Source: Klebsormidium nitens (taxonomy: Eukaryota; Plantae; Klebsormidiophyceae). From it: a stretch of DNA of 64,000 nucleotides. The notes below the pieces were generated by a model. That model saw only the letters and a list, made by a program, of their open reading frames with translations. It did not search any database and was not told where the DNA came from. Shown here one piece after another: positions 1,912 to 19,179 of this stretch; the first letter of the stretch is position 1, and the number at the start of each line of letters is the position of its first letter. Location: assembly GCA_000708835.1 (NCBI GenBank), contig DF236959.1, positions 295,728 through 359,727 of the forward strand, given 5' to 3'. The translations under genes were made by a program, and so were the position numbers.

Positions 1912-1981
1912 CCATCAGCGTTTGTGCATACTGTCGATCTGATGTTGAATCAACCAAAAATCAACACGGAATAAAATCAAC
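1912..1981 (+). repeat. Left terminal inverted repeat
   Basis: ccatcagcgtttgtgcatactgtcgatctgatgttgaatcaaccaaaaatcaacacggaataaaatcaac aligns gaplessly with the reverse complement of 18050-18119. Confidence 0.85.
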
Positions 1982-2090
1982 ACTGGCTTTAACGGCTGAT
2001 CAACGTTGATTAGGAATCAACAACATATAATCAACGGAAATCAACAGTCGCTGTTGATTTTGCTTCATGATTCTCTTTCAACGTCGAATC
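1943..2090. repeat. Left subterminal array of ATCAAC/GTTGAT motifs
   Basis: At least 7 (a/g)atcaac copies, including the perfect 12 bp palindrome atcaacgttgat near 2000-2010. Short subterminal repeats are typical of CACTA elements. Confidence 0.7.
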
Positions 2091-2421
2091 ATGTACGTAT
2101 CAAGAAGGGCAGGGATACTTGATCAGGCGTGTGATCTGTGTTGATTGAGCACCATATTAATGGAGCTTGTACAATGCGAACATGGGATGTAGAGATGCAA
2201 ACTCATTGCATGTGATTGATTCGGGCACGCATCCATCAGACTCAGCGGTCTAAACACGCAACCCATTGAACGATTATTTGGAAACAATTTCATATCAGAT
2301 GATGTCAATCGTAAGAACAAGTAGTTCTAGACACCAAGTGAGAGTTCCTACTGCTGGCTACTACGTCTCATCAGAACTGGTGACGAATCAGGTCCTTGTA
2401 GTACACAACGAGCTAACGTGA

Positions 2422-5400
2422 CTAATCAAACCACTGTTCGGGGTTTGCTGCGGTGTCGTTGGCTTGCTCAGACGAACCATTCTCACTTGCTCCCGCTGCT
2501 GCCATTGCCTTCGCGCGCTCTGCTGCACGGCTCTGAAGCCTCATCGGGCAGACCGTAGGGTCTTCCGGTGCCACAACAACTACGAAAGCACTGACTCGGG
2601 GCTCTCCGGCTAGAGCCTCCTCGCGTAAGTGTAGCATCGTCGCCTCCTGCTTCTCCAAACGCTTGATGCCCCGGAATTGCAGCTCCAGCTGCGTCGAAGT
2701 GAGAGGTCGTTTTCAGCTTTATGCTATCGTGCACCATCAGCATTGGTAGTGGTATCTTCTGAGTCTGAGCTAGACAGGTCCCAACTACTCAATTAGCTTT
2801 TGAGTAGACATTTGGGCATGGTGGAGCTGTTGATAGTGCTGTAAGGATCTAACCGTCCAGAGAATAAGGTGCTTGCACAACAGAAATCGTTAACTCCTCT
2901 CGAGCTGCTCGAACTTCTGCCAAATCACTGGCCTAATGAAGTCGAAGCGCTTCCGCATTCACCACAGCAATCCGCCTGGAATCCGAAAGTTTGCGGGTCT
3001 GACCTTTGATTATATGAAAATGGCTTTCATTTCATCGAAGTCAAAGACAAAGTGTTCTGACGAATTGACCAAGTCGCTCAGAGGTTCGCATCTAGCAATT
3101 AAGCAACTCAATTGGAGTGGCCCACTGGATAGGGTTCGAAAGTACGTACCACAACCTCGACCAATGCAAGCCGAGCCAATGTCACGACAAGCTGATCTGG
3201 TACAGGTTGATGGTCAACGTCCACGCCACACGCCTTCGCCAAGACTGTACGGAAGCGCAGGTCACCGTAGGCGTCCGTACCTGCCTTGCGATAGGCGTCA
3301 CCTGTCGACATGCATGAGGATGATCGAGGATGTCAGCAAGACGTCCCAGGACTTGTCAGATGTCTCGAAACAGTTTGACCAGGATACAAGGACCATTCAC
3401 GTGCGGGACGACGGAGATGCAGCTGCTCAGACAAAGCTGGACATCTTGTCGTGGACATGGATCCCATAATTGCTCTGATCAGGTCTCAACAACCGAGAAA
3501 CCTGATTGTCACTGTATCAAAGTTCGCAAGAGGGGAATACTGGGCCTCCCGAGCTGTTGGGTTCAAAAAGCAGATTCTGACGTACAGCCAGTACAGGGCT
3601 TGCAAAGAACAGCATATGACATTTATGATATAGGGCACATTTACAGAAAACTTACCTGCGAGAAGCTCGGTGGTAATCTTTGACCAGTCTTCAGTCCCAG
3701 TCGCAGGCAAGTCGTACCACTTTGTTGCTGCTCCCCGAATAGTTGACACCGCTTGGCCTCTCTTCATGCGGAACTTGTCCATTTGGTGAGCTTGGATGAA
3801 GTCTTCGTATAGCTCGTCGAAGAGATCCTCCTGCTCTGGGTCTGGTCCCACTCGAAGTGCGAGCTTGGTGTTGCTCCTCATGAGCTCGGAGTCAGCAACT
3901 CCAGATGTGAGCATGCTTAGGTTGACAGCATCGGAGGCGAGGAGCTGCGGGAAAATTTACAGTGAGTAGGGCGCCTCGTTTTCAACAAATGCTAAACGAC
4001 AAAGCTTTCAAAATGACCGAGACGAGCCCCATCTGCTGTTCCTTACAAATCGTTGGTCGATCCGGAAAACAAATGGACAACTCGGCAAAGAGCTCACTGG
4101 CTGAAACCCACAACTTGAAAGGAAGACGAACTGCGTACATGTGTCGAACCATCCTCAAAGCCTTCCTCTTTCATCAATGTTGGAACGATAGACTACTGGC
4201 CCGTCATTGGTCTTCCAAGTTATGCATCGGAAAGGTCAGAATGGAAGGGAATCCAAAACATTAGCTGCAGAGCCCCTGATCGTAAAAGAAGCATGTCTAT
4301 GGACCGCACAGAAAAAGCAAAGAGCTAAGTGCACCTGACATGGCACCATACAAAATGTTAGCTGAGATCTCAACCTTACAAATCGAATCGAAAGGTTTAC
4401 TTGTAGCTTGTCGCTGTAGATATGCGCACGCGGCTGCTTACTTTGATTGGGGACTTTGCGGAGCTGAGGAGCTTGGGGTTTGCCTTGAGTTTTTCGAGGG
4501 GCCCAAGCTGATGCTCCGGCACTCCAACCTGCACAGGCAACGTAATCAATGAGTCTTGTTATCTGGTTACGTAGGACAAGACAATACGTTTCTATCTTGT
4601 TGGATTGCGTTCTGCTTTTGTGGGAGGAAATGCAGCTGAATCCGCAAGGAAGAAAGTGCGAGTAAGGCCTAAGCTGTGCTATGAACATCGCCTGCATTGG
4701 AGTTTGCAGAGTGGTACTGATCCAAGTTGGGATAGATAGCAGCTAGCTTGATGACGCAGTCAAATCTAGAAAGAGGTTTTCCGCAGGATGACTACTGAAT
4801 CTGCATTGCTGAGGTTCTCTTCTTGAGCCTTCAGGTTCCTTAATAGATAAGCTGAGCAGAGTTGGATATGCAACATCAACGAGGCGAAGACGAAAACACT
4901 CCAGCTCATTCAGTGATTCTAAATTAGAGGCATGCAAGTGAAAGGGTTTCAGAGTAGATCACATGTTGAGACACCGTCACCGAAGACGTTGCAGGGTCAG
5001 GACTTTGCTGGCTCAATCCTGGTCTTGTCTTCTTGAAGCAGTTTAGGAGCTGAGTCATTGACTTCTCCAGTCTGTCGTTGCGCGCCAGTTGCTCAACCTG
5101 GGCCTGCTGCATTTTCAGGTGCGACATAAGCAAAAGGTTGAGGTCGATACCGGCTTCATTGGAAGCCGCGGAGAGCACCAGGTTAGCTGCGGCACTTCGA
5201 CGGATGTTGCTACAGGACTCTCCACCTGCGACAGAAAACAAAGTAAGAGAGTAAGGACCAGCATTGGATCATCTGGAGCGCTCTCATTACTTGAGACCCC
5301 GCCCGTACATATCAAGTAGTCTGGCCAATTCTGGCAAAACACTTCATCTGCCTATGTTAAAACTCGAGTTTGGCTATCTTCCTGCTTCAAGTAAGCAGCT

Positions 5401-6684
5401 GAACCACCAGATTCAGGGAGATCATTGCATCAGGCATTGCAGGGTGACTAACACAGCCTCTGACTTCCTCATTCAATCCTGACCTTCCTCAAATCCCTTT
5501 CAAGAAACCACGATCACAATTCATTTTCACTTACTCTTCTTATCCTGAACGGGGACGATTGCTCTATCGTTTCCAGCTTTCTTCCTCCTTTTGCGCGGTG
5601 CCTCTTTCCTTGGGATCGCTCCCAACAGTTCAGCGAGGTCGTCCTCGGCAGCATCGCTATCAACCTCACCACCTTGCAGAAACGAAAGAGAGGCATGCTG
5701 TGAGCTGTTTCAGAAGATAGAATGATGTTTCACAGCTTAGTAGGCCTTGAATGCTCTAATATACTTGGATGAAGTGTCCACAAAAATGTATGATATTCTG
5801 CTGAATGCAGCTTGCCTTCTCTGAAAGGTCACCTTCAATAGGGAACTGTATACATGGCGGAAACAAACTATGGCAGCTATCCCAAATGGCATCAAGGTGG
5901 ACGAGACCTGTATAGCTACCAAGACCAGGACTCAGCTAGTGCGCGACGTCAATCTGGTGTTATCCTCCCTTTGACATGTTCCCAGCCTTAATCTCTTGAT
6001 TGCAGGGCTGACTTGCTGCTAAACACTGGCTACTTTGTGGGATCACAAAAAAGCATTGCAGAATCCAATCCATTTGAAATTACAGTTTGAAAGTTGCCTT
6101 ACTCTTTTCGGTATCCTCAGCCTCCTCGGTACCCAGTTCCTTAGCAGCATCCTCCTCCTCCAGGTCATCGTCTCGAAACTATCCGTCTCCTCTTCACCAT
6201 CCTCACCCTCTTTGTATTCGGAACCTGAATGCTCCACCGAAGGCTCTCTGCGTGCCCGTCTGCCTGCGGCCTCAGTGCCGCCAGCATCTACATTCAGCTC
6301 ATCCTCCTCTTCACTTGAATCTTCTGCAAACAAGTTCTGCATCTGCGGCCTGTTCCTTTTGCCATTAGCATTGGCGCTGTCAGGTTGTCCAGCTGCAGCT
6401 GCTATGGCTGCTTTCGCTTTGGCGAGAGCGGCGGGATTCTTACAGTTCTTAGTCAACCATTTTGCGACTTCTCCAGCGTCATCCCCTAGCATGTGTGCAA
6501 GGCGGGCCTCTTCAGTGGTGGCTGATCTCTTAGGCCTTTCTGCCAGAGAAGGAAGCGGACCGCTGTCTTCTTTGTCCTTTGGTAGAGCACCACCACTGGC
6601 TTTGGCCCGCTTGTCGCCAGCGGATGCGGCATCATTCCCTTTCCTCCCTCCACCGCCAGCCATAATTGACCATTCGCTGTGCAA
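2422..6684 (-). CDS. Multi-exon passenger gene of unknown function (basic/acidic low-complexity N-terminus, helical C-terminal part); possibly frameshifted
   Basis: Exon-like blocks bounded by AG/GT: 6684-about 6104 (MAGGGGRKGND...), about 5670-5535 (GEVDSDAAEDDLAELLGAIPRKEAPRKRRKK), about 5226-4980 (MSHLKMQQAQVEQLARNDRLEKSM), about 3940-3655 (EQEDLFDELYEDFIQAHQMDKFRMKRG), about 3300-3145 (DLRFRTVLAKACGVDVD) and about 2688-2422 (LELQFRGIKRLEKQE...NPEQWFD*). Some internal exons are unresolved; no domain recognised. Confidence 0.6.
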
Positions 6685-7656
6685 GGCGACGTGGAAAAGT
6701 AAGTCTTACTTACCTAGGTAGAAAGGTCTTGTCTTTTTCAATTCCTCACGTCATTGCGGCAAGCACTGGCAACCTAGCAACCTCACTCAGTACCCAAGTC
6801 AGACTCGGGGTCACTGGTCAGTGGTCACGGGTCAGGCTGACCTTCTTTTTGAATGCGTTTCGTACTTGCTGACTCAAACGTTTGCCGTCGATCTTCAATC
6901 TGTGCGATCGAAGGGTCCTTTCACGGGCTGCATGCTTCAATATAAAGAAACTAACAGCGTCGATGTACGGCTTCTCATCGCCTTTGCCGTTCGATGTACT
7001 TTTCCCGCCACTTCCAACTGTAGATTACCGCCGTAAGATTATCTGAGGCGACAATCTTGAGTCGTCCGATGCACCTGAAGGAAGGGCAGTTCTCCGAAAC
7101 GCTCTTCATCGTCCATCAGAGGCACAAAGAATGATCGGAAGGCTGACATTCATTCACGTCCTAATCGTGTGAGTGGAAGAACATGATCTCGGTATAGTTC
7201 AAGTCTCAAGAAGGTCCAGTCTATCAATACCTATAGCGGGTGCAAGCGAAGCATGCCAATGGCGTCAATCTGGTAATGGATGGCACCCTTGAAGGCATCT
7301 TGCCAACCTAGGTTGCGCAGCAAGATTGTAGTTGAAACATCTAATGGAAGCCTCTTTTGGTCCAAGAAAGGTGGATTATTGTTTTTTCCTTTGTATCTTT
7401 CAGCACTTCTTGGTGGTAATGGGGATATGCTGACATTCCGTGAGAACACCAGTGACCAGGTGTTGACTAGGGTTGTACACAGTCTGGACAGAGTGAGAGG
7501 TTGAAGCTTCCACAAAAAGCGGAGCACACTCAGGCTGAACACGCTGTAAGCTCAGGGTGGCAGATGTGCAGCCACAGCTGCAGTGGGCTTTGAAGGTCAC
7601 GCCTCACACCATAGCAGGGGTTTGTGTACTGGCAGGATCAGTCTTAGATGTTGCAG

Positions 7657-10369
7657 CTGCAGATGGAGAGCAGCGAGTTGGGTGTTGGTGTCCGCCTTAT
7701 TTGCAAGGCAGAATCAACGAGCACCTGGGAGTTTGAGGAGCCGCTGTACTCATCTCTGCCGCCTCTGCATTCAGTAGATATGCCCCGCGAGCTTGTCAGG
7801 GTAAACGCGCCGGCATCCTTAGTTGAGCCTCTTCATGTTTACCTTCATGCGGCGCTGTCAAAAGAGAAGGACTCAGCGGGCAAGTGGCGGGCCCTGTTCA
7901 TGAGATATTACCAATCAGAGCGAAAGCTTTGGGATTCTGTGTTTCTTCGATTTGAATCGCAGTATCGACTCAAGCAGATTGAAGGCATTTTTCAGAAGCT
8001 GAAGCGAGGGAACATTGCAAAGAAGCCGGTTGTTCGAGTCACCGCGGTGGTGGCCTTGCCGCGAGCTCGTGGTTCTGGCAGCAGGTGAGTTTCCGGGACC
8101 CAAAACTCTAATAAGGGGTCTTCCGCAGGCTTTTGTTGCCCATCATTGCTGAAGCCTCACGGTGGTCATTTGAAAGGTATTGTTCTAGAGAGGCGTGGAA
8201 CCCTTGCCAACCCAGGTTTAAGTGAGCGTGCCTCTTTCAATAAACAGACTTTACTACCGAGTGTCCGTTAAGAACCTGCTCAAGGTAGACTTGCTGCAGA
8301 CAATGGCGCCGCCGAGTATGCCATCCACTTTGGATTTGCACCGTTCATGTTTGCAGGCTTTAGGAAAATCCTCACACTTGACTACTCACCAATCTTGTGT
8401 CGATTGCTCTACATGTTCATAGATCAGAGAAGTCTGCTGAGAGTCACTGTCCTTGCTGGTCGATTTGAGATGGATTGTGTTGAAGCTCAGAGTATTGCCG
8501 GATCAGGTCCAGTGTAATCACGTACATTGCCCATTCTGCAGGGACGGTCGCACAGGGACAGAGGTGGAGAGGTCGGGCGAGCAAAGCGCAGGTGGGGCTC
8601 TCGAAGTTGTGCAGACGGGGAATGTAAGATCTGCCGACGACAACGGCACACAAGGGCCAGGTCGGGAAAGGGAAAGATCAGGGGCAAAGGCAGAAGCAGC
8701 GTTTGCAAATGGGGAAGTTGGCAGTTTAGGAAAGCCAGGAGGTGCTGATGCGCGGAGTGGGGGAATACCTCCTCAGGGTCTAAGAGAGACGGATATGGAC
8801 GGGGCAACAAAAGGCGAGAGCGTGGGGCAGGCAGCGAAGAGCGGCAGTGGGGGCTGCAATAGCGCGGTTGCAAGCACTTCAAGCTGTCAAGCTGCCTCCG
8901 GCATCAAGGGAGGGGTGAACGGCGCCGCAGCATCCTTCGAGACGGTGCCAAATGGAACAGTGGACAAGGTATGTATGCAGTTACACTTGATCTGGGAGTT
9001 CCCTTGCTTGAGAATCACAGACTGACAAGGCAGGATTCTGCCTTGCATGTCCGGCTGAAAACCTGCTAGTTGTGTCTTGCCTATGAAGATTTCGATTGTC
9101 AATTGGGAGCTCGTGTTCCTTCCTGTTGTGTTGTGTCACAAGCCAATTGCTGCGCAGATTCGATCACGCATTGTGAGTTTGTTTGGTGTGGTATTGCTGT
9201 TGAGAAACAGAGAACAGGTTTTTTGTCTCGTTGTGTTTGCAAGCTGGTTCTGTCCACATCCCTTGCTTTCAATTCAATATCCGTTTTGAACATATTCGAA
9301 AGCTCGCTGCGCAATCAGGGCAATCCAAAGTTGGCCACTGAGGATTCCCTACAAGCGAATATTGAGCACGCCAGTCTTGATCAGTCACGATCCAGTCATA
9401 CCTCAGCTCAGACTGCAGAGAAGTAATGTTCATCAACTCTTTGTTGACCACACCTTTGTGCTGCAGTCCCTGCGCATGCTGACGATTGAGGAGCGAGAGA
9501 TGCTCCAACTGCCGGACCTGGCTGACGCTGTGGGGAGTGGGTCGTATGGAACGGTATATGAAGTGTTGGTTGACGGGGGGTCTTCTTGGGCTCGCGTCTT
9601 TCCCGATCGTGTTGGGACCAGGGTTGCTGTAAAAGAATATCGCCCTAAGGGCCTAGGTACTGCGTACACAGTCGAAAACGTTTCTTATGAGGTCATTCTA
9701 GCATCAGCTTTCTCTCACAACAATGTCGTTAAGCCTTTCGCAGTGTGCATCAGCGGTCCAGCTTTGCCTCTCGCTTTCTTTCCTTACTTCAATCAGGGAT
9801 CTTTAGGATCTGTCCTTCGAAAACGGGATGATCGCAGCTTGAAAAAGCCCCTCGCTAAGCTGATGTGGACAGCTAGGGTTCTCGTAGGGGCGTGCTTGGA
9901 TCTTTTGAAGGCAATCCAGCACGTTCATGGTAAGGGCATTGTACATAATGACCTGACTCCCAACAATATCCTCGTTCACTTTGACGAACGTGAGTTGTCA
10001 ATAAAACTGGCTGTGCACGACTTTGGTTTGGCGAGTAGGCTTGTCGACCGCAAGAGTCACCGAAGTTTCAAGTCCGTCAAAGAGGAGGAGCAGTATGCTA
10101 AGAGGTACAGGTACGTTGCTCGAGAGCTCATCTTAGGGAGCTGCTTTTCAAAGGCAAGCGACATGTATGCTGTAGGTCTTCTGTTGGAGGATATTCTAGG
10201 GCTCGATCGGGCTTCCGTCAGAAAGGAATTGTCGGAATCAAGAGATTGGAGCGAGGTGCTTCTTTCATTAGCTTCGTTGGCCGAAAAAGTCCCTTCAAAG
10301 AGGCCGACTTGCGATCAGGTACTTCATGCTTTTGAGACATTGTGGCGAGTATATCAGTATAGGAACTGA
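7657..10369 (+). CDS. Spliced Ser/Thr protein kinase (non-RD, HND catalytic loop) with an uncharacterised N-terminal domain; 5' exons unresolved
   Basis: Phase-consistent exons 7657-8084, 8542-8968, 9467-10369. Kinase motifs: GSGSYG, VAVK, alpha-C Glu (SYEV), HNDLTPNNILV, HDFG, YVARE (APE equivalent), SDMYAVG. Confidence 0.9.
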
Positions 10370-11956
10370 AAGACGAAAGCTAATGTACATTAACGAACTA
10401 AGAACATTGTTCGTAAGTGCATGGTCCGACGTCACTGAGCTCGAATGGAGTCTTGCACACCCGCCTGTGGAGTTCCGTTCTTGATTGTGCCAGATCGAAT
10501 ATTGCATGTGCCGGCATGCAGTAACTTCGATTACACAAGATGTATATGCAACATGATGAACATGGGGTGCGGTTGAGGTATATGCCGGGCCGACAATTTT
10601 CAACCGTCTCGTAAGCACTGCAAATTCTATATGTGGGCCCGGTCCTCTAACAACCTTAATCAAGCTCTTCAATTGAGACGTTAATGTGACGCTTGTATTC
10701 TATGGCCCGATAAAAGCTTAACGCTTTTAGAGCTAGACGATCCGCGCACTCATTCAACCGTCACTGAGTCAAATCCTACTCCTACATGAACTGTGTATTA
10801 ACCAATGTGTTCGTCTATAATGACATGTCGAGCAGGCGCCGCCGCGTCTGTCGCATGAGCACACCGACATGTTCGAAATTTAACTCCATCCAATAGGCCC
10901 CGTGTATGATACTTACCATCATGAGTTGGCGCGGCATCAGAGGTCCGACTTTATTGCACGCCACCCGATGACCCTAATTAGCGCGTGCCCCTAGCGCGTT
11001 GCGTCATGTGTGCGGTGTGTTGTATCGCTGAGTTTGGCAAATCAATGTTTCGTGAATTTCATGCTGCTTGACTCTCCTGCCAGACATGGCTGACCTAGTA
11101 CGAAAATGTATCATTAACATGATTGCACGAAATATGTTAAATCTTCAAATGGTCTCCGAATGTACAGGCGCCACATTGCCGGACCGGTTGAGTTTGATTC
11201 CAAGGACTTGAATGTTTCTGCGGTCCGCGGGCCACGCCTCACCGTCAGCACTGCAACTGAGTTATCACCGCATCATGCACTTGTACTGCCAGTGCCGCCA
11301 TAACACACGGTACGTATGAGGCTATGATGCGGCATATATATAACTATTCAGACAATTGTAACTTGTGAATGTGCATTGAAGTGAAATTCGAGCTAGCCTT
11401 GAAAGTTTGACTTACTCGCGGACCGACATGTCACGGCGAACGGTAATTTTAAATTCGCATGAACGCGTTGGAAAGAATTCCACATATGTCGGTTCAAAGG
11501 ATGAAGCGCACTGCATGCTGCTCGCACATCTGTACTTTGTATCGAACCCACACTGACAAGCATGACATTGATATATGTTTGGACTCGGTACAGCGTCTTC
11601 GCGAATCTTCGACGACTCGGATTTACATGCATATGATGTCGGGCCCCGGGCTCAAGCAGTCGGCACAATTGCATTGATGTTATTCTCATGCCTGGCCATG
11701 GCATCGTTGTCCGGTCACTAGCACTGTTTTGAACCGGGTTGTGAATGGCACAACAATCATGATATCAGGATCATGAGTACAAAGCTTGATATGGCTGCGA
11801 GCCCCAAAACGTGTGTCGGAATACGTTGAAACTGACAACTCGGGTAAGCTACAATAATTATGATACAGGAACATCCATCCGGTCGAGCGCTCTCGAGTCG
11901 GATGCATCAAGGGCTAGCTGAATATACTTGATCTATTGTTTCCTAGCGACTATGCC

Positions 11957-14900
11957 CTACACTAGACGGGTTTCATTAACATAAAACATACCTTCGTTGT
12001 TTGGATCCGGGAGGATGTGCTCAAGCCGTTTTATTGTTTGAAGGCCTATGACGTCATACCGAACCTGCTCAACACCCCCGGGGCCGTTAACCATCTCCCA
12101 TTTTAGACGGATGCTCCTGGTCCCGTCTTGTGGGCCCGTTTTCTGATACCACTTCACGAAAGCATAGGCGCGCTTCTGTCCCCGGTGATCGACACAGGAA
12201 AACAACAAACGAAGTTGCGCATACCAGTCAGTCCGTTCCAGTCGCCCTCGCCGTTCCGACCCGACACCATCCACAATCACATTGCTGAAAACGGGCCGCT
12301 GGTTCTGCCCGAAGCATGGGTTCGCCCGAGCCAACTCCGTCTTCAAACTGCCGTCAGGCTGCCGCGCTCTTGCAATCGCAAGCGTCTTGTGTCGGATAAC
12401 CTGCACAAAATGAGGCAGACCCGTTCGACTTCGCATCTTCGCAGTTTGACACTCGTCAGCAATGACTCTACTATATCTTGACAGTTTTGCCGAGGGCTTT
12501 GGCGAATGCAGAAGCGAAAGCAAGCAGCCTCTTGGCAACGTTCACCTTATGCTTAAGCAAAATTCATCAAGGGAAGCTTCCGATTTAGAATTTCAAGCAT
12601 TGCTGATTAAAGGATCCAATCAACGCATCCCGGAGCATCCTGGTGACTTTCTTGGGGCTTTCTTTCAATTGGACGTTTGCGCGATTCAGATCCAGATTTC
12701 TACGGAAACGTTGCGAGCAGCCATAAGGTCAGAAGAGGCCGCATCAATCCTCGGTCCATACTTCTTCTCACCTTGGCGTCTTGAACGGTGGGAAGATTCG
12801 CGAGCAAAGCTCGCGTGCCTCTGGGATTCCCTCCGAGGTGCGCGCGAAGGACGCGCTCGAGATGGACCAGCTCGGGCTGCGCGAGAAGGGCGGGATCTCG
12901 ATTGCCGTCCCGCAGGGACTGCCTGGAGAGACGGAAGAGACGGAGAGGGCCACCTTTCACGCTCAGCAGGTTGGTCTTCTGGTCTCTAGCCTGCAAGCAA
13001 AAGCGAAACAACTTTCAATAAGGTTCTCTGTAACGATGCTAAGCAGCCACAAACAGTTAGCTTGTTGTCCGGGGCAGGTAGATACGATAGAAGGTTCACG
13101 CAAGGACGACGCCGAGGAGGACAGTGCGTGGATTGCAACAAGCAGAGCCTTTCTTGAGAGAGTACTCGAGCCATCGGAGCGTGTCAGGACAGTCGGTTCA
13201 TGATTATGCAATTGAAGGCCCCCTGACTGAGCGCTTCCTGCAAACGCTGAGGCACAAACGCTGACCGGCAGAGAGCTTTGACCGGTATCAGTCGGTTTAA
13301 GCGATCCGAAAACCCCCTTCGAAACACAACGAGAACGAAACCAAAAGAAAGAGAAGTAAACGGACAAACGACAGATGAATCTAAGAAGAGGGCGGCACTT
13401 GCAAACTTAACGTGATGCAAAGCGCCAAGGATGCAAAGCGCCCAGATGCAAATGAATTACACCTCACCCGCTTGCGGAGAGCTGTCTCCTTCCGAGTCGG
13501 AACGAAGTAGTCCTTGCCCGCTTTGCGCAGGGCGAGACGGTCGGTCACATGCTTGACCATTTGCAGCTGCATATGGTTTTTGTTGGAAGCTCTGAAGGGG
13601 TTCTTTGCCGTCCTCTTGTGACTCGACTCGTAATTATCGGCAGAGTACTCCCCGGGAAGACCTTTGAGACTGACCGACTCGGTAGAATGCGCGTTGGTGT
13701 GTACCTTGGAGGTACCCCAACCCGAAGCCTGGTAAGGCAAAATCCTCTTCATCTTAGCGAGGACCTTATCCCAATCAGCGTCTACCTTCGCCAAGGACGC
13801 ATCGGTGTGACCTCGGCTTTTGTGCCGGACAGCAAAGTCAAGGTACACATCAGCGAAATCGCGAAAGAGGGGTGTTATCTCGTCACGACCGTTGGGCAGT
13901 GTAAAAACTCCCACGACGGCATAGACGGCTACCTGCAAGAAAAACGGACAATAATTTGTCTCCTCAGTTTGAGCGGGTGAAAAGCTCTGTGAGTCGGCGA
14001 CCAATCAAACAGGGACCGCCTGCCCTATGTTTCTGCTTTTCACAAAAGCATGCGTCCAGGTGTGCTTTGCAGGCTTTTACTTTGTTTAAGGCGCGCTTGC
14101 AACCAGATAGCCAGCTGTCCTTTATAGGTAACAGCAATTTGACTCTGAGGTAACAGCAGCCCGAACTGGAGTCTGGCCAAAGAGAATCAAGGATGTTGCC
14201 TGCACAGAAGTGAGGGGTGCAAGTTGAAGGATAAGTGCGGCAGCAAAATCGAACAAAGGTACCAGAAACAGCAAGTGAAAAGGGAAAGATAAGTCTAACA
14301 AAAGTACACAAGAAGAATCGGCCGCAGCGGCACGTGCAATCAGATGTGCGAAGCAGGAGTTGTCGAAACCCACCGACAAACTGTGCCGATGCTCGAAGGC
14401 GGTTACGAAAGACGAACCGCCCAGGAAGTCGATGTTGGGCAAACGGAGACCAGGGTGCGAGTTCCGGAAGGAGAGAAAGCGCTTGTTCGCTAAAGCCACG
14501 CGCTTATTGCCCTCCTTGGCTCCGAACTTGTCCTTAGCGTACTCGCCCACGAGCTCGAACAACATGGGTATTACCCCGTGGTCCAGCTGCAAATACAAAA
14601 GCACCGTGCTCTTCGCCCTCTCTTGAACGTTTTTAGGAACCAATTGTGCGACTCAAACACGGATCGATAGCAGAACACGCTTCTTACAGGACGAGTTCTT
14701 GAAGCTCCAACCGAGTTCAACATTTGCCTCACCTCGTAGTGCTTTCGAAACAGATGGATGGGCCCAGCGTATGACTAAGGAAGCCAGAAAAGCTAAAACC
14801 GGAATCAGATGCCGCAGTGCTTACGGTGCGTACCTGGTGCATGATCTCTGGTAGTATGGATCGATAAACGTTCCCGGATTTTGTGTTCCCCCCCTTCCAG

Positions 14901-17540
14901 TCCCATAAAGCATTCTGCAGAATCACGTTATAAGGTAAATAGCATGGATGCATGATCAGATTCGCTGAAGCTTCGATGGCTTTCTAGGACCGGAAAGCTT
15001 TCCCAACTGGAACCTGGCATCTAGTTCGGAAGACACTTCGCACGACCAGGGACTGCCAACTTATCTTTCTCAAGGAGATCGCATAAAAGCAGTCATGTGT
15101 GTAGAGAAAGGAGGCGCATCTCACCTCAACCGGGTTCACTGACCAGCCTTTGACCAATGACTCAATCACCGCATTACAGCCTCCCTGTGCATGGAGCTTC
15201 ACAACCTGATCGTAGATCTGCTTCATCCTCTTTTCTGTCCGAAGTTCGGCGCGTCTGCCTGCAGCTAGATCATCAAGGTCGCAGGCCAGCACGAGACACG
15301 TGTGACAAGGGCAGTTAGTCTTGTTGCCACTCTTTGTACCTGCAGCAACACAGCCTTCTTGCCAGTCAGTTACGACGGCGTATATCATAGGCCAAACTGT
15401 TGTCTTGACTCCGTCTGCATCCTCAACCTCCATGCCCCTGCACAAAAATAAGTTCAGTCAGAAGATGCTCTTGATCTGGTGGTAGTCCCTCGTTACCCAT
15501 TGAAACGACAGGAAGAGAACAGAATGTTTGCAAGAGTCTAGGTGCAAGTCAACTCTTCCCTACTCCCGCCTGCCAGTGCTCATGACGTGAAAGCATTGGC
15601 TTAGACAATCTGACTCAGTGATTCTCAATCCAAGACATGGATCTAAGACAGCAAACCTTACGTCAAAGTGTAAAGTTTCAAGCGCTCCAAAATTCTCCGA
15701 TAGGAGTCGTGCCATATCTGGAGCTGCCGTAAGCGGAGCGCCTCTGAGCCTTCCGAGAGACCCGACTCTGGGCGTGGTGCCACATATGGAATGTAACCCA
15801 CAAGAACCCAACCAGAGAGCTTCCCCCTGAGCTCCTTGGGAATGTTGGCAAGGCTCAAGATCACTGGGCGCACTTTGAGTCGCCCACTCAAACTGAGCGG
15901 TGTCCCGTCGCTATACAGTATGAGCGCCAGCACTGTGTCTGACGCTGGGATCAAATTCTGCGATGGCAAGCACAGAATATGTTGACTTCCTCGCGTCTGG
16001 CGAAACATCTTTGTCTTGTACTAGTCCTGACTCCTAACACTGCTTTTGTGAATCAAGGAAATACGCGACTCAAGAAAACACAGAGTGTGACAGCGCTACT
16101 GCACGGACTCTGGCTGTGAACTGCTGTGAGAATCTAGATCTCGGAGGAAGTGCGGAAGTGATTATATCTTGAAACACACCCACATAAACCCAGAATTAAG
16201 GGCTGGAGCGCTCACCTGCATGTCATGCCACCAGACGCCGGTGTGCGCCTCTTTATACCGGCGCTCCCCATTCTTGATCCGCAGAATCTTGGGCTTCAAG
16301 ATCAATTTTCCAGCGTGCGCCGGATCCTTCCACAAACTCAGAACAGCAGTATACGCATCGCAGTAGTCGAGGAAGAGGTCTTGTCCATCCCCGGGGCCCG
16401 CTAGGTTGGCTCTAGACCAACCTTCCTGCATACCACATTGCAACCATTAGATCAGTCACAGCTTTGCGAGCTGACACTAGCAGCTTCCAACACCCCACGG
16501 GTCAGGACAATGATGACTGGGAGATGAGTACGCAGAGTGCGCAGACAATGAGACGTACCCAGCTGAGCAAAGAAACAAACTGAATCAGTAAACTCTGTTT
16601 GCATTCCTAGCTGATTGTGTAACTCGCTGAAAAAGTGATGTGGTTGCACCAGCCAAAGATTAAGGTGAAGGGCATGGCAGTACAGGTAGAACCGACAGGA
16701 AGTCAGCCAGGGGGGCAAGAGAAGTCCTCTGAACATTGAGGCTTTTGCTGTGAGACAGTAATCACAAAATGTAGCTCAATTTTTACTCTGCCATCAAAGG
16801 CGTTCCCTTGTCTTGCCAGGCCTACAAGCTGCCAAAACAGAGTCAGGCTCACAAGAGATAGTATCACGTCGGGGCCTCACCGGTCTTGGGAGCGTGTCAA
16901 TATGCTTCTGCACATCTTTGTCATTCTTCAATCCAGGAATCTCAGCAAAGCTGAGCAGCCAGTTCTGGTCCTTCCGAGAGAGCCCTCTGCCCCCATTGCA
17001 GTTTTTTATGAATGCTACAACCTCTTGCCTTTTCTCTTCCGCTGGATCTTCAGAAGCAAAGGTGCTGGACCCGTCACAAGGAGGAATCTGTTCGAACCGC
17101 GCCCCAACTTGCTGACCTAAGGCAGATGTCCTTGGTTCCGGAGATATGAGGTGGTGGTATGAAGTGTCTGCTTCTTCGGAGTTACCTGTCCCAGCTGCAT
17201 CTTGAGTTACAATATGAGGAGGAGTTAGAGGATCTGGGATGGGCGACAAGGGGTGGGAGGAAGAATCGAAGGCGTTGAACTGCCGGAGCGGCGATGATGG
17301 TGGAACTTGTGTCGACGTACTAGTTGCAGTGATAGATGCACTAGATCTCACAGGAATGCAGCCCCCCTCCTTTCGCTGGTGGTTGGTTAGCTGCTGATAG
17401 GAAACAAACTTGCTCTGACACTTACGGCACACAATCCTGCCACCAAGGGGACTGCCACGCCCGTTAGCGGGGGACCGTGCAACAGCTCGTCTTCTGGGAG
17501 AGAGGTGTGGAAAGAGGTTATCAATAAAATGGTTGACCAT
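11957..17540 (-). CDS. Plavaka-type (CACTA/Mirage/Chapaev superfamily) DDE transposase, 9 exons, about 966 aa, with N-terminal C2H2-like zinc finger
   Basis: Exons 17540-16881, 16425-16216, 15957-15662, 15437-15125, 14914-14834, 14586-14374, 13932-13468, 12990-12772, 12400-11957, all GT-AG and phase-consistent with no stops. Motifs: CRKC-x12-H, EAHTGVWW, ILYSDGT (D1), VTDWQEG (D2), CHTC (C-x2-C), EIMHQLDHG ([M/L]H), KVHTNAH (H-x3-H), YESSHKRTAK (E), and C-terminal AQLRLLF...AFVKWY...YDVI...FYVN. Confidence 0.9.
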
Positions 17541-17914
17541 GTTCAAGCTGAACAAAGCTAATATCACAAGCAGTCCAGCTCCCAGCTAGCTGCGCAGCTC
17601 TGGAGGCTGGCCTTTCTTTCAAGCTAGTACTTCTAAGCTAGGAGTCCTCCAGTGATGAACCTTGCCAAAGTTCTGCCACTTGCGCAATGCTGACCGTCGC
17701 ACGGCCCCGCGTTGCTACTTTCCCACAGTTTCCCTCAAGGCTACAGCATTGCTATTAGAGAAGAGTTGTCTCGTTCCTTCTAGAAGCAATGAGGCTAATT
17801 TGCAAGCTGAGTCCCAGGGACAGCAGTATGGTCACAGGAGCTTGTTGTGACTCCGAAGAATCTCGAGATATCAGCTGTGCTGGTGCAGTCCCGCCACGCT
17901 GTCAGAATTAAGTA

Positions 17915-18100
17915 CGTCGATTAGCTGATACAGATATTTTCAAGTTCAGTTCAACGGGCTTCCCAACCGTTGATAAACTTTCACGGTCGAATCAAGAGTC
18001 AAAGTGCTGGTCGATATACAATCCGCGTTGAATCGACACTGGACCCGCCGTTGAAATTATTTCTTGTTGATTTGTTGATGATTCGACAAGTAATCGACAA
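17915..18100. repeat. Right subterminal array of GTTGA(T)/TCGA motifs
   Basis: Dense gttgat, gttgaa, tcaac, tcgac and gtcga motifs mirroring the left end. Confidence 0.65.
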
Positions 18101-18119
18101 GATCCCAAAACGCTGATGG
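18050..18119 (-). repeat. Right terminal inverted repeat
   Basis: Reverse complement reads ccatcagcgttttgggatcttgtcgattacttgtcgaatcatcaacaaatcaacaagaaataatttcaac; 53/70 identical to the left TIR. Confidence 0.85.
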
Positions 18120-19179
18120 CCGCTTCTGCCTCAGACTCTGAGTCAAACAGGACATGAGCCAGCTGCCACTTGCAAATAATGCTGCGCCAGTGCTGGACAG
18201 TGGGGTTGCTGTACCTGGCTACACAGCTGTCGGTACATGGTCACTGGTCATATCAACGACGAACGTGTGAATCCGTTTCAGAACAGCTTTCCACCCGGTA
18301 GGAAACTTAGGTGGCGGTCGATCGTGCGGCATGCTGAAGCCGGACATGCGGGCCACAGCCTCGGGCCTGATCACTGATTGGCCTTAGGCACAAAGCTACA
18401 TCGACGGCTAATACGTTCTGACCTTATAGGCACTAACTTCCGGGCTGAGTCCAATCATTTGTGCTTGGGCGTGCATAATGGTGCCAGTGCCCAGCGCCCG
18501 GCACAGCCCCTACCCCGCGCACCTCAACCGGGGCTCAACCCTGCCTCCAACGATACCAAGATTGGCGACTTCTTGGCATATACTCCAACAAGCTCTTCAA
18601 CATTGATGGCATCACCGACCTTGGCCCGGGAAAGCGGGAGTACATCGGGCTGTCCACTGGAGTTTGCACGGTGATGCAGGAACCGAGCGAGGCGGACGCA
18701 AACGCGGTGTACCAGTGCTATACGTCGCTGCAGTTCCAGTCGGGGAAGTACGCGCCGAGCGCGATCTTCCTAGCGAGCGAGTTCCAGAAAGGTCTTGCTC
18801 GTATCTCTTCCGTTTGAAAAGTCGGTTTGCCAATCAATGACACTATGAAGTGAACAGTTAGTCGTTTTGCACTTGGTTAAACGCTGCGTATCAGACCGTT
18901 GTTGAATCTGACCCCGGGACGGACCAATTCTTTTCTTGGCGCGGCATCAGTTTGGGCATGAGCTGAGATACGATTCCGGCCTTTCTGCCCTGACAATGAT
19001 ACTCAGCTCGCTAAGTGCTTCGCACACTGGACCTGATTCAGAATCTATACGCATCGCAACATAGGCAATAGGCCTTTTGCATCTTTTCCTGCTTTGCACG
19101 GCGAATAAGCTCACCACACAAATCGATCTTCCACTGACTCTTCATTAACGTCAATGGCTGCAGTCGTCTTCAGTGACAG

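Follow-up and report, generated by a model that had tools for sequence, protein, structure and literature searches.

Plavaka is a member of the CACTA/Mirage/Chapaev/Transib (CMCT) clade of transposons. Elements of the PlavakaB type end in 5'-CATCA..TGATG-3' and show target site duplications (TSDs) that are 2 or 3 bp long, and fungal Plavaka elements with TET/JBP genes as cargo have been described (Kojima 2025, PMC12730594). Giant red-algal Plavaka elements of 17–19 kb carry three accessory genes, PAG1-3 (10.1101/2025.02.11.637652). Plavaka transposases have also been reported from streptophyte algae and moss, grouped with fungal Plavaka in the CACTA/Mirage/Chapaev clade (PMC13519894); the passages of this Spirogyra pratensis paper considered here deal with transposase domains and describe no element structure, termini, TSD, cargo or link to a kinase. 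In this study, we analyzed a 64-kb stretch of Klebsormidium nitens DF236959.1 (hereafter the window), in which an initial annotation, made from the sequence alone, had proposed a transposon carrying a transposase, a protein kinase and a second large gene (hereafter ORF2, for open reading frame 2). We conclude that positions 1913–18118 of the window (16,206 bp) are very probably a full-length copy of a PlavakaB-type element that is likely able to move itself and that represents a family in Klebsormidium. The initial annotation had left open whether such an element was already described, and the answer is divided: Plavaka in streptophytes, PlavakaB ends and giant cargo-carrying Plavaka are published, whereas full-text literature searches found neither a kinase-carrying autonomous DNA transposon of this clade nor a description of this Klebsormidium element. 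No accessory gene of the published elements is a kinase, and the nearest cases mentioned in the literature were kinase genes situated close to Mutator-like elements (MULEs) in Rhizophagus and pieces of kinase genes carried by MULEs of maize.

The element is bounded by terminal inverted repeats (TIRs) at 1913–1982 (plus strand, beginning CATCAGCGTTT) and 18049–18118 (minus strand, ending ...AAACGCTGATG), with termini of the CATCA..TGATG type. As annotated initially, a 12-nt sequence, CCATCAGCGTTT, is perfect at both ends, and it occurs at only two sites in the window, 1912 (+) and 18119 (−). The reported TIR match of 53/70 from 1912 was reproduced without gaps (52/70 when counted from 1913), against 17.5 ± 3.7 matches, and at most 33 in 20,000 trials, for random pairs of 70-mers from the window. 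The element first placed at 1912–18119 is thus real, with each end drawn one base too far out. The exact termini were read from L001, a 16,472-bp Joint Genome Institute (JGI) metagenome contig that aligns with 1913–18118 in one piece at 97.3% identity and whose flanks of 125 and 123 bp are unrelated to those of the window. The left junction of L001 reads ...CATGTG/CATCAGCG and the right junction TGCTGATG/TGCGCA... (a slash marks the junction). Because L001 reads GTG/CATCAGCG...TGCTGATG/TGC, the termini are CATCA..TGATG with a 2-bp TSD, and not CC..GG (CCATCA) as first proposed. On this model the window reads GC/CATCA...TGATG/GC, with GC at 1911–1912 and 18119–18120, and L001, in which homology begins at 1913, has TG at both equivalent places. 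A TSD length of 2 bp is likely but not settled, resting on two complete insertions (GC in the window and TG in L001). Termini of the CATCA..TGATG type were read in the window, at both ends of L001 and at the right end of L003, another K. nitens copy. The CCG noted initially on both flanks is present, but as a 3-bp TSD it fails in L001. The empty site predicted in the initial annotation was one base pair off, following from the corrected terminus; the expected sequence is ...GCCCACCGCCGCTTCTGCC (longer string, ...AAAGCCCACCGCCGCTTCTGCC) under the 2-bp model and ...GCCCACCGCTTCTGCC (longer string, ...AAAGCCCACCGCTTCTGCC) under a 3-bp model.

The layout proposed initially, with ORF2 on the minus strand, the kinase on the plus strand and the transposase on the minus strand, was confirmed in the window, and the window, L001, L003 and L006 all carry these three genes, arranged in this order, between ends of the same kind. 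A search with the kinase exon returned, besides weaker matches, P0001 (98% identity) and P0003 (K. nitens KFL_001560290). L003 (K. nitens GCA_000708835.1, scaffold DF237105.1) follows the window collinearly, starting at the left subterminal repeats and reaching the right terminus; its exons are 70–89% identical to those of the window, its introns are mostly unalignable, and its annotation comprises a protein of 530 aa on the minus strand, a kinase of 422 aa on the plus strand and a Plavaka protein of 907 aa on the minus strand. L006 (K. nitens DF237989.1, 16,358 bp) is likewise collinear, and this scaffold is practically the element alone. A Logan contig, L046, holds a further diverged ORF2 adjoining left subterminal repeats and represents a fifth lineage. 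Since L001 is a 97% copy between unrelated flanks with its own 2-bp duplication, the 16,206-bp unit moved whole. When looked for, unlinked cargo, TIRs that do not co-occur and cargo without the transposase, which the initial annotation had named as contrary outcomes, were not encountered.

The transposase gene occupies 11957–17540 on the minus strand and encodes 979 aa in nine exons (16880–17540, 16216–16424, 15661–15996, 15125–15436, 14834–14914, 14372–14586, 13467–13930, 12770–12989 and 11957–12398), of which the third has an acceptor uncertain by up to 24 nt. As had been described, the frame is uninterrupted and begins close to the right end, with the ATG at 17540, 579 bp inside, and the stop codon at 11957–11959. 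In the hidden Markov model search proposed as a check, three exon pieces matched Plavaka (PF18759) at 29.5, 44.4 and 28.8 bits (cut-off, 26.3) and together covered profile positions 44–296 of 325. Assigned by motif reading and the Pfam register and not by structure, the predicted catalytic motifs D320, D426, C446-H-T-C449, M531-H532, H682-x3-H686 and E706 are all intact, and they are conserved in four copies save MH, which reads otherwise in L006. By contrast, the label "CACTA-type" did not hold: no CACTA or CACTG termini are present, the ends being CATCAGCG; the 3-bp TSD fails in L001; and the Pfam search gave no match to Transposase_21 (tnp2), with Plavaka as the only family at E ≤ 0.1. We provisionally assign the element to PlavakaB from its termini, TSD, Plavaka profile and motifs. 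The original proposal that this is a Plavaka element bounded by TIRs, carrying genes and encoding an intact transposase is supported.

Eight introns had been predicted in this gene, and Logan contigs of three RNA runs showed seven of them as GT-AG joints on the minus strand (16425–16879, 15437–15660, 14915–15124, 14587–14833, 13931–14371, 12990–13466 and 12399–12769), whereas the eighth, intron 2, was seen only retained. None of these seven joints occurred in contigs of the DNA run. The RNA word share over the transposase region was 0.57–0.58 in at least six runs, fitting its exon fraction. The three runs with spliced transposase contigs are nearly empty over ORF2 and kinase exon 1, which argues against contaminating DNA as the origin of those contigs. 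These results indicate that the transposase is transcribed and spliced at seven introns. With the seven joints applied, the frame is open from 17540 to 11957 except for the stretch of intron 2 (15997–16215, minus strand), which contains three in-frame stops, and RNA contigs are continuous through it (15715–16424). This stretch has a GTGAGC donor at 16215 and an acceptor near 15997, and it is the sole part of the transposase region that is unconserved in the diverged copy L003, whereas its flanking exons are conserved. From the stops, the donor and the lost conservation, we regard it as the eighth intron; four phase-0 acceptors within 24 nt are possible, and splicing it out yields the 979-aa protein.

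Retention of intron 2 in three independent RNA runs would give a product of ~290 aa that contains the N-terminal zinc-finger region without the DDE core. This product recalls the repressor isoforms of other transposons and may, by analogy with P elements, act as a regulator.

ORF2, an orphan accessory gene, lies at 2422–6663 on the minus strand and encodes 550 aa in seven exons (6207–6663, 5535–5672, 4963–5225, 4442–4528, 3656–3944, 3150–3301 and 2422–2688). This gene model was built on frame-specific conservation together with GT-AG splice sites, and it is in line with P0017 (KFL_001560300) and P0013 (KFL_010400010), two homologues annotated in K. nitens. The protein consists of a low-complexity N-terminal half with PRKRRKK, a helical stretch and a conserved C-terminal part of ~235 aa. 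No Pfam family was found for ORF2 or its full-length homologues even at E ≤ 10, and the family has only five cluster representatives among 1.84e9 proteins. ESM-Atlas features gave a weak lead (0.88–0.93) to Basidiomycota hypothetical proteins, DUF6698 and DUF6532; DUF6532 is listed in one paper among domains co-enriched with Plavaka/KDZ in Ganoderma (PMC8955403).

The kinase gene (7648–10369, plus strand; exons 7648–8084, 8542–8968 and 9419–10369) was modelled from conservation in other copies and splice sites and encodes 604 aa, comprising an N-terminal domain of ~145 aa, a linker of low complexity and a full kinase domain (PF07714, 5e-23; PF00069, 7e-23). The motifs GSGSYG, VAVK, HND-LTPNN, DFG and ARE were identified; the catalytic loop HND-LTPNN is non-RD (not arginine-aspartate), with Thr replacing the usual Lys. 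The nearest solved relatives are MET, MLK1 and ROS1, at only ~1e-11. Judged by its sequence, the protein is a divergent tyrosine kinase/tyrosine kinase-like (TK/TKL-like) enzyme with all catalytic-domain motifs present. The model of the N-terminal domain had a predicted local distance difference test score (pLDDT) of 78 and a predicted template modelling score (pTM) of 0.74, and its fold matched nothing in Foldseek searches of the PDB (best E, 0.27) and the AlphaFold database clusters (0.26), or in VIA-align (Z, 3.2). An E2/RWD-like fold was considered for this domain and rejected, as the rows were not significant.

To compare the three genes, we calculated dN/dS (nonsynonymous to synonymous divergence, omega) by the Nei-Gojobori method in all three pairwise comparisons of the window, L003 and L006. 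The dS values were 0.49–0.80 across ORF2, the kinase and the transposase, and the three genes therefore share a divergence age. Omega was 0.25–0.31 for ORF2, 0.21–0.24 for the kinase and 0.09–0.11 for the transposase, and no bootstrap interval reached 0.41, so all three genes were constrained while the lineages diverged. On a shorter time scale, the window and L001 differ by 1.14% in exons and 2.10% in non-exon DNA (Fisher p = 3e-6). ORF2 and the kinase thus travel with the element under constraint as constitutive modules, as the initial annotation had supposed.

Several observations weigh against the reading of a complete, mobile element with working cargo. In the three transposase-positive RNA runs, ORF2 and kinase exon 1 were essentially without RNA contigs; the single ORF2 contig was 198 nt long, came from the 3' end (2367–2564) and had low depth in one run. 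For kinase exon 3 the word share peaked at 0.17, in a single RNA run, and was 0.00 in the other RNA runs labelled with that species; given such sparse RNA from ORF2 and the kinase, co-expression of cargo and transposase was not shown. Under the conditions covered by these runs, the cargo genes are silent or their transcripts rare. All RNA contigs across intron 2 retain it, so that a full-length transposase mRNA is predicted only, and no empty site or excision footprint turned up, although an empty site was not specifically searched for. The TSD length has n = 2, only two insertions having both ends readable. No DNA-binding domain was detected in ORF2, and its AlphaFold2 model, built from an 8-row alignment, was unusable (pLDDT, 39). 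Finally, the transposase of L001 is projected with a +1 frame shift.

This frame shift falls at L001:10951-11244, in a stretch of 80% identity that corresponds to window residues 746–843 around exon 12770–12989; this copy is either truly defective or affected by an error in the metagenome assembly. The kinase of L001 is intact, and its ORF2 is nearly so, with a stop three codons early.

The sparse cargo RNA bears first on the possibility that ORF2 and the kinase are passengers captured once from the host, without a part in transposition, and that they stay intact through host benefit or youth. Gene capture is common in other DNA transposons, neither cargo gene was detected in the transposase-positive RNA contigs, and kinase paralogues with the same N-terminal domain (48–57% identity) occur at three loci, L002, L004 and L005, without this transposase or ORF2. 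However, omega of 0.2–0.3 at dS of 0.5–0.8 points to long-term constraint on copies of a mobile element and not on one host locus. The order and orientation of the genes and the non-coding block between ORF2 and the kinase are conserved, the ORF2 family is nearly confined to these elements (the five representatives noted above), and the paralogous kinases are each linked to one conserved transposase-like gene. We therefore consider passengers unlikely, and prefer the reading in which both genes are constitutive modules of the element.

The transposase-like gene shared by the three paralogous loci, a conserved multi-exon gene that we call gene X, lies at L002:7592-9679 (−), L004:538-3266 (+) and L005:2495-4496 (−). 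Its motifs W-x-L-x-x-D-[LM]-K...C-L-Y-C, C-T-[LM]-H-A-x-N-R and E-K-[ST]-H-W-R-A-K resemble the pattern D..C(2)C..[M/L]H..E-x-S-H-K-R-x-x-K of the window Plavaka transposase, and its nearest ESM-Atlas clusters are RAG1 ZnC2/ZnH2, Transposase_21 and Plavaka (0.88–0.91). Gene X had no match in Pfam or PDB profile searches, a word-indexed search returned the query alone, and hhalign against the window Plavaka gave a probability of 0.3%. Kinship with the window transposase was accordingly rejected in alignment and profile searches, and the motifs and the Atlas lead remain. Gene X may be a second, very divergent transposase of CMCT type with the same kinase module. A broader idea, that in Klebsormidium-like algae the kinase with its private N-terminal domain serves CMCT-clade transposons as a mobile accessory module and rides with both this Plavaka family and gene X, is conceivable but tentative. 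If true, it would be the first transposon-maintained protein kinase, one steering transposition or host silencing via phosphorylation, and it would have been swapped between transposon lineages like the fungal TET/JBP and red-algal PAG genes.

Retention of intron 2 bears on another alternative, namely that the window copy is immobile, having become a relic or been domesticated, with intron retention keeping its transposase transcript non-functional. In its favour, the contigs from all three RNA runs keep intron 2 with its stops, neither an empty site nor an excision turned up (with the restriction stated above), and in a DNA run, X1, one 9-kb contig alone holds the right junction, with no second insertion of identical sequence evident. 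Against it, the three reading frames and both ends are intact, the 97% copy elsewhere shows recent movement of the lineage, contigs lose rare isoforms, so that a spliced form may exist, and TIRs are usually lost upon domestication. An immobile copy therefore seems distinctly improbable to us. Very improbable is the alternative that the initial ends were right and that the element has CC..GG termini with a 3-bp CCG TSD as in CACTA/EnSpm: CCG does flank the window element on both sides, the right end of L003 likewise reads ...CGCTGATGG, and 3-bp TSDs are possible in PlavakaB families (PMC12730594), but the L001 bases outside CATCA..TGATG are G and T, which are not complementary, its 3-bp flanks mismatch (TGT and GCG) whereas its 2-bp flanks agree (TG and TG), homology between the window and L001 spans exactly 1913–18118, and the window reads equally well as GC/CATCA..TGATG/GC.

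The flanks and the wider window yielded little else. No further element copies were found within the 64 kb, and a Pfam search of the flanking ORFs gave no family, so no disrupted host gene was identified. A scan of metagenome contigs for the terminus CATCAGCNTTTNNNNATNNTGTCGA returned 38 loci, none of them element-like beyond the pattern; this collection evidently lacks the sample of L001. The triplet CGC follows the 2-bp duplication in all three readable right flanks (GC/CGC at 18121–18123 of the window, TG/CGC at L001:16352-16354 and GT/CGC at L003:16254-16256), with no mirror-image counterpart in the left flanks; either a target preference or chance could account for it.

The element also has structured non-coding parts. 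Subterminal ATCAAC arrays had been noted initially, and the two 300-bp stretches richest in ATC[AG]AC in the 64 kb are indeed the element ends: counting both strands, 11 copies lie within 1912–2200 and seven within 17830–18119, against three or fewer per 300 bp elsewhere. The left array (11 copies in both orientations) extends over 1933–2145 and the right motifs (seven copies) over 17916–18098; the left array is kept in L003, L006 and L046. In the divergent intergene between ORF2 and the kinase, a non-coding block at 7242–7420 is conserved (77% to L003 and 72% to L006), whereas the intergenic DNA around it does not align to either copy. This block is a candidate shared promoter and may alternatively be a 5' untranslated region exon.

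From this anatomy and the selection on the genes, we propose the following working hypotheses. Once intron 2 is spliced out, the DDE transposase would be produced, bind the CATCAGCG termini, excise the element and reinsert it, cutting the target with a stagger of 2 bp. An element protein may bind the ATC[AG]AC arrays, either the N-terminal zinc-finger region of the transposase or, if the example of En/Spm TnpA applies, ORF2. The kinase may be a regulator kept by the element that phosphorylates the transposase, ORF2 or a host factor and so influences transposition or silencing. When intron 2 is retained, the ~290-aa protein would be made in place of the catalytic one.

Comparison of the RNA and DNA runs with the window revealed additional variation. 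RNA word depth at 15396–15789 and 13556–13656 was 4–20 times that of the rest of the transposase, one 101-nt RNA contig with three differences from the window had a depth of 330–407, and a non-canonical joint, 15445>15654, was present in RNA at high depth. These high-depth patches likely derive from better-expressed Plavaka paralogues that share conserved stretches. RNA contigs also carry a few single-base differences from the window that are absent from X1. X1 itself differs from the window at ~20 positions over 2350–8300 and 11850–17750, has a 4-bp insertion (AAAA) after 2745 in common with L001, and shows two alleles over 6784–6897; an X1 contig stops at ~1913, which is where the element begins on the left. 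The window and X1 hence stem from strains or copies that are not identical. L001 was considered as the source of the RNA and X1 variants and rejected, as most variants are unmatched there (for X1, 5 of 20 match). Because the RNA, X1 and L001 bases disagree, several near-identical variants or strains exist.

To our knowledge, accessory genes kept by DNA transposons are rare, and those known, TET/JBP, SET with adenine methylases and the VANDAL anti-silencers, all target DNA or chromatin marks. A kinase under purifying selection in several diverged lineages of a single transposon family would add phosphorylation signalling to that list. We know of no Plavaka that has been studied experimentally, and an intact, complete element would be a compact system for testing Plavaka movement. 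The K. nitens genes KFL_001560290, KFL_001560300 and KFL_010400010, annotated as "hypothetical", are transposon genes, and this origin matters when kinase repertoires are counted in streptophyte algae and compared with those of land plants.

Among known systems, En/Spm of maize and other plants belongs to the same wider DDE clade and has short subterminal repeats in both orientations, and its two-protein logic, in which TnpD is the transposase and TnpA binds the subterminal repeats, can be likened to the arrangement here. The Klebsormidium element differs in having CATCA and not CACTA termini, a TSD of 2 and not 3 bp, and no Transposase_21; its proteins come from separate transcription units, whereas those of En/Spm are splice products of one transcript, and ORF2 has no similarity to TnpA, so that a TnpA-like role would be an analogy only. 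The giant Plavaka of the red alga Bostrychia falls in a similar size class (17–19 kb against 16.2 kb here) and likewise has a fixed accessory set across families; in both, repeat arrays are possibly bound by an accessory protein. By contrast, there are two accessory genes here and not three, and the copy number is low, whereas the red-algal elements make up a third of the genome. The PAG domains (N6-adenine methylase with SET; ParB-like with 2-oxoglutarate oxygenase) had no Pfam match among the ORFs at 2.4–11.8 kb or the ORF2 homologues, the kinase domain being the sole Pfam hit in the accessory genes, a search that would miss a very remote kinship of ORF2, since PAG3 itself is detectable only by HHpred. 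PlavakaB of Agaricomycotina (Iyer et al. 2014; Kojima 2025) is alike in its PF18759 domain, CATCA..TGATG termini and 2-bp TSD, and some of its families have an accessory gene, as here. It differs in its host, which here is a streptophyte alga, in its cargo, which here is a kinase and an orphan gene and not a TET/JBP dioxygenase, and in the transposase gene, which here has eight introns. The Plavaka kind itself is therefore known, and what this locus adds to it is the kinase cargo, the host group and the full anatomy of an element.

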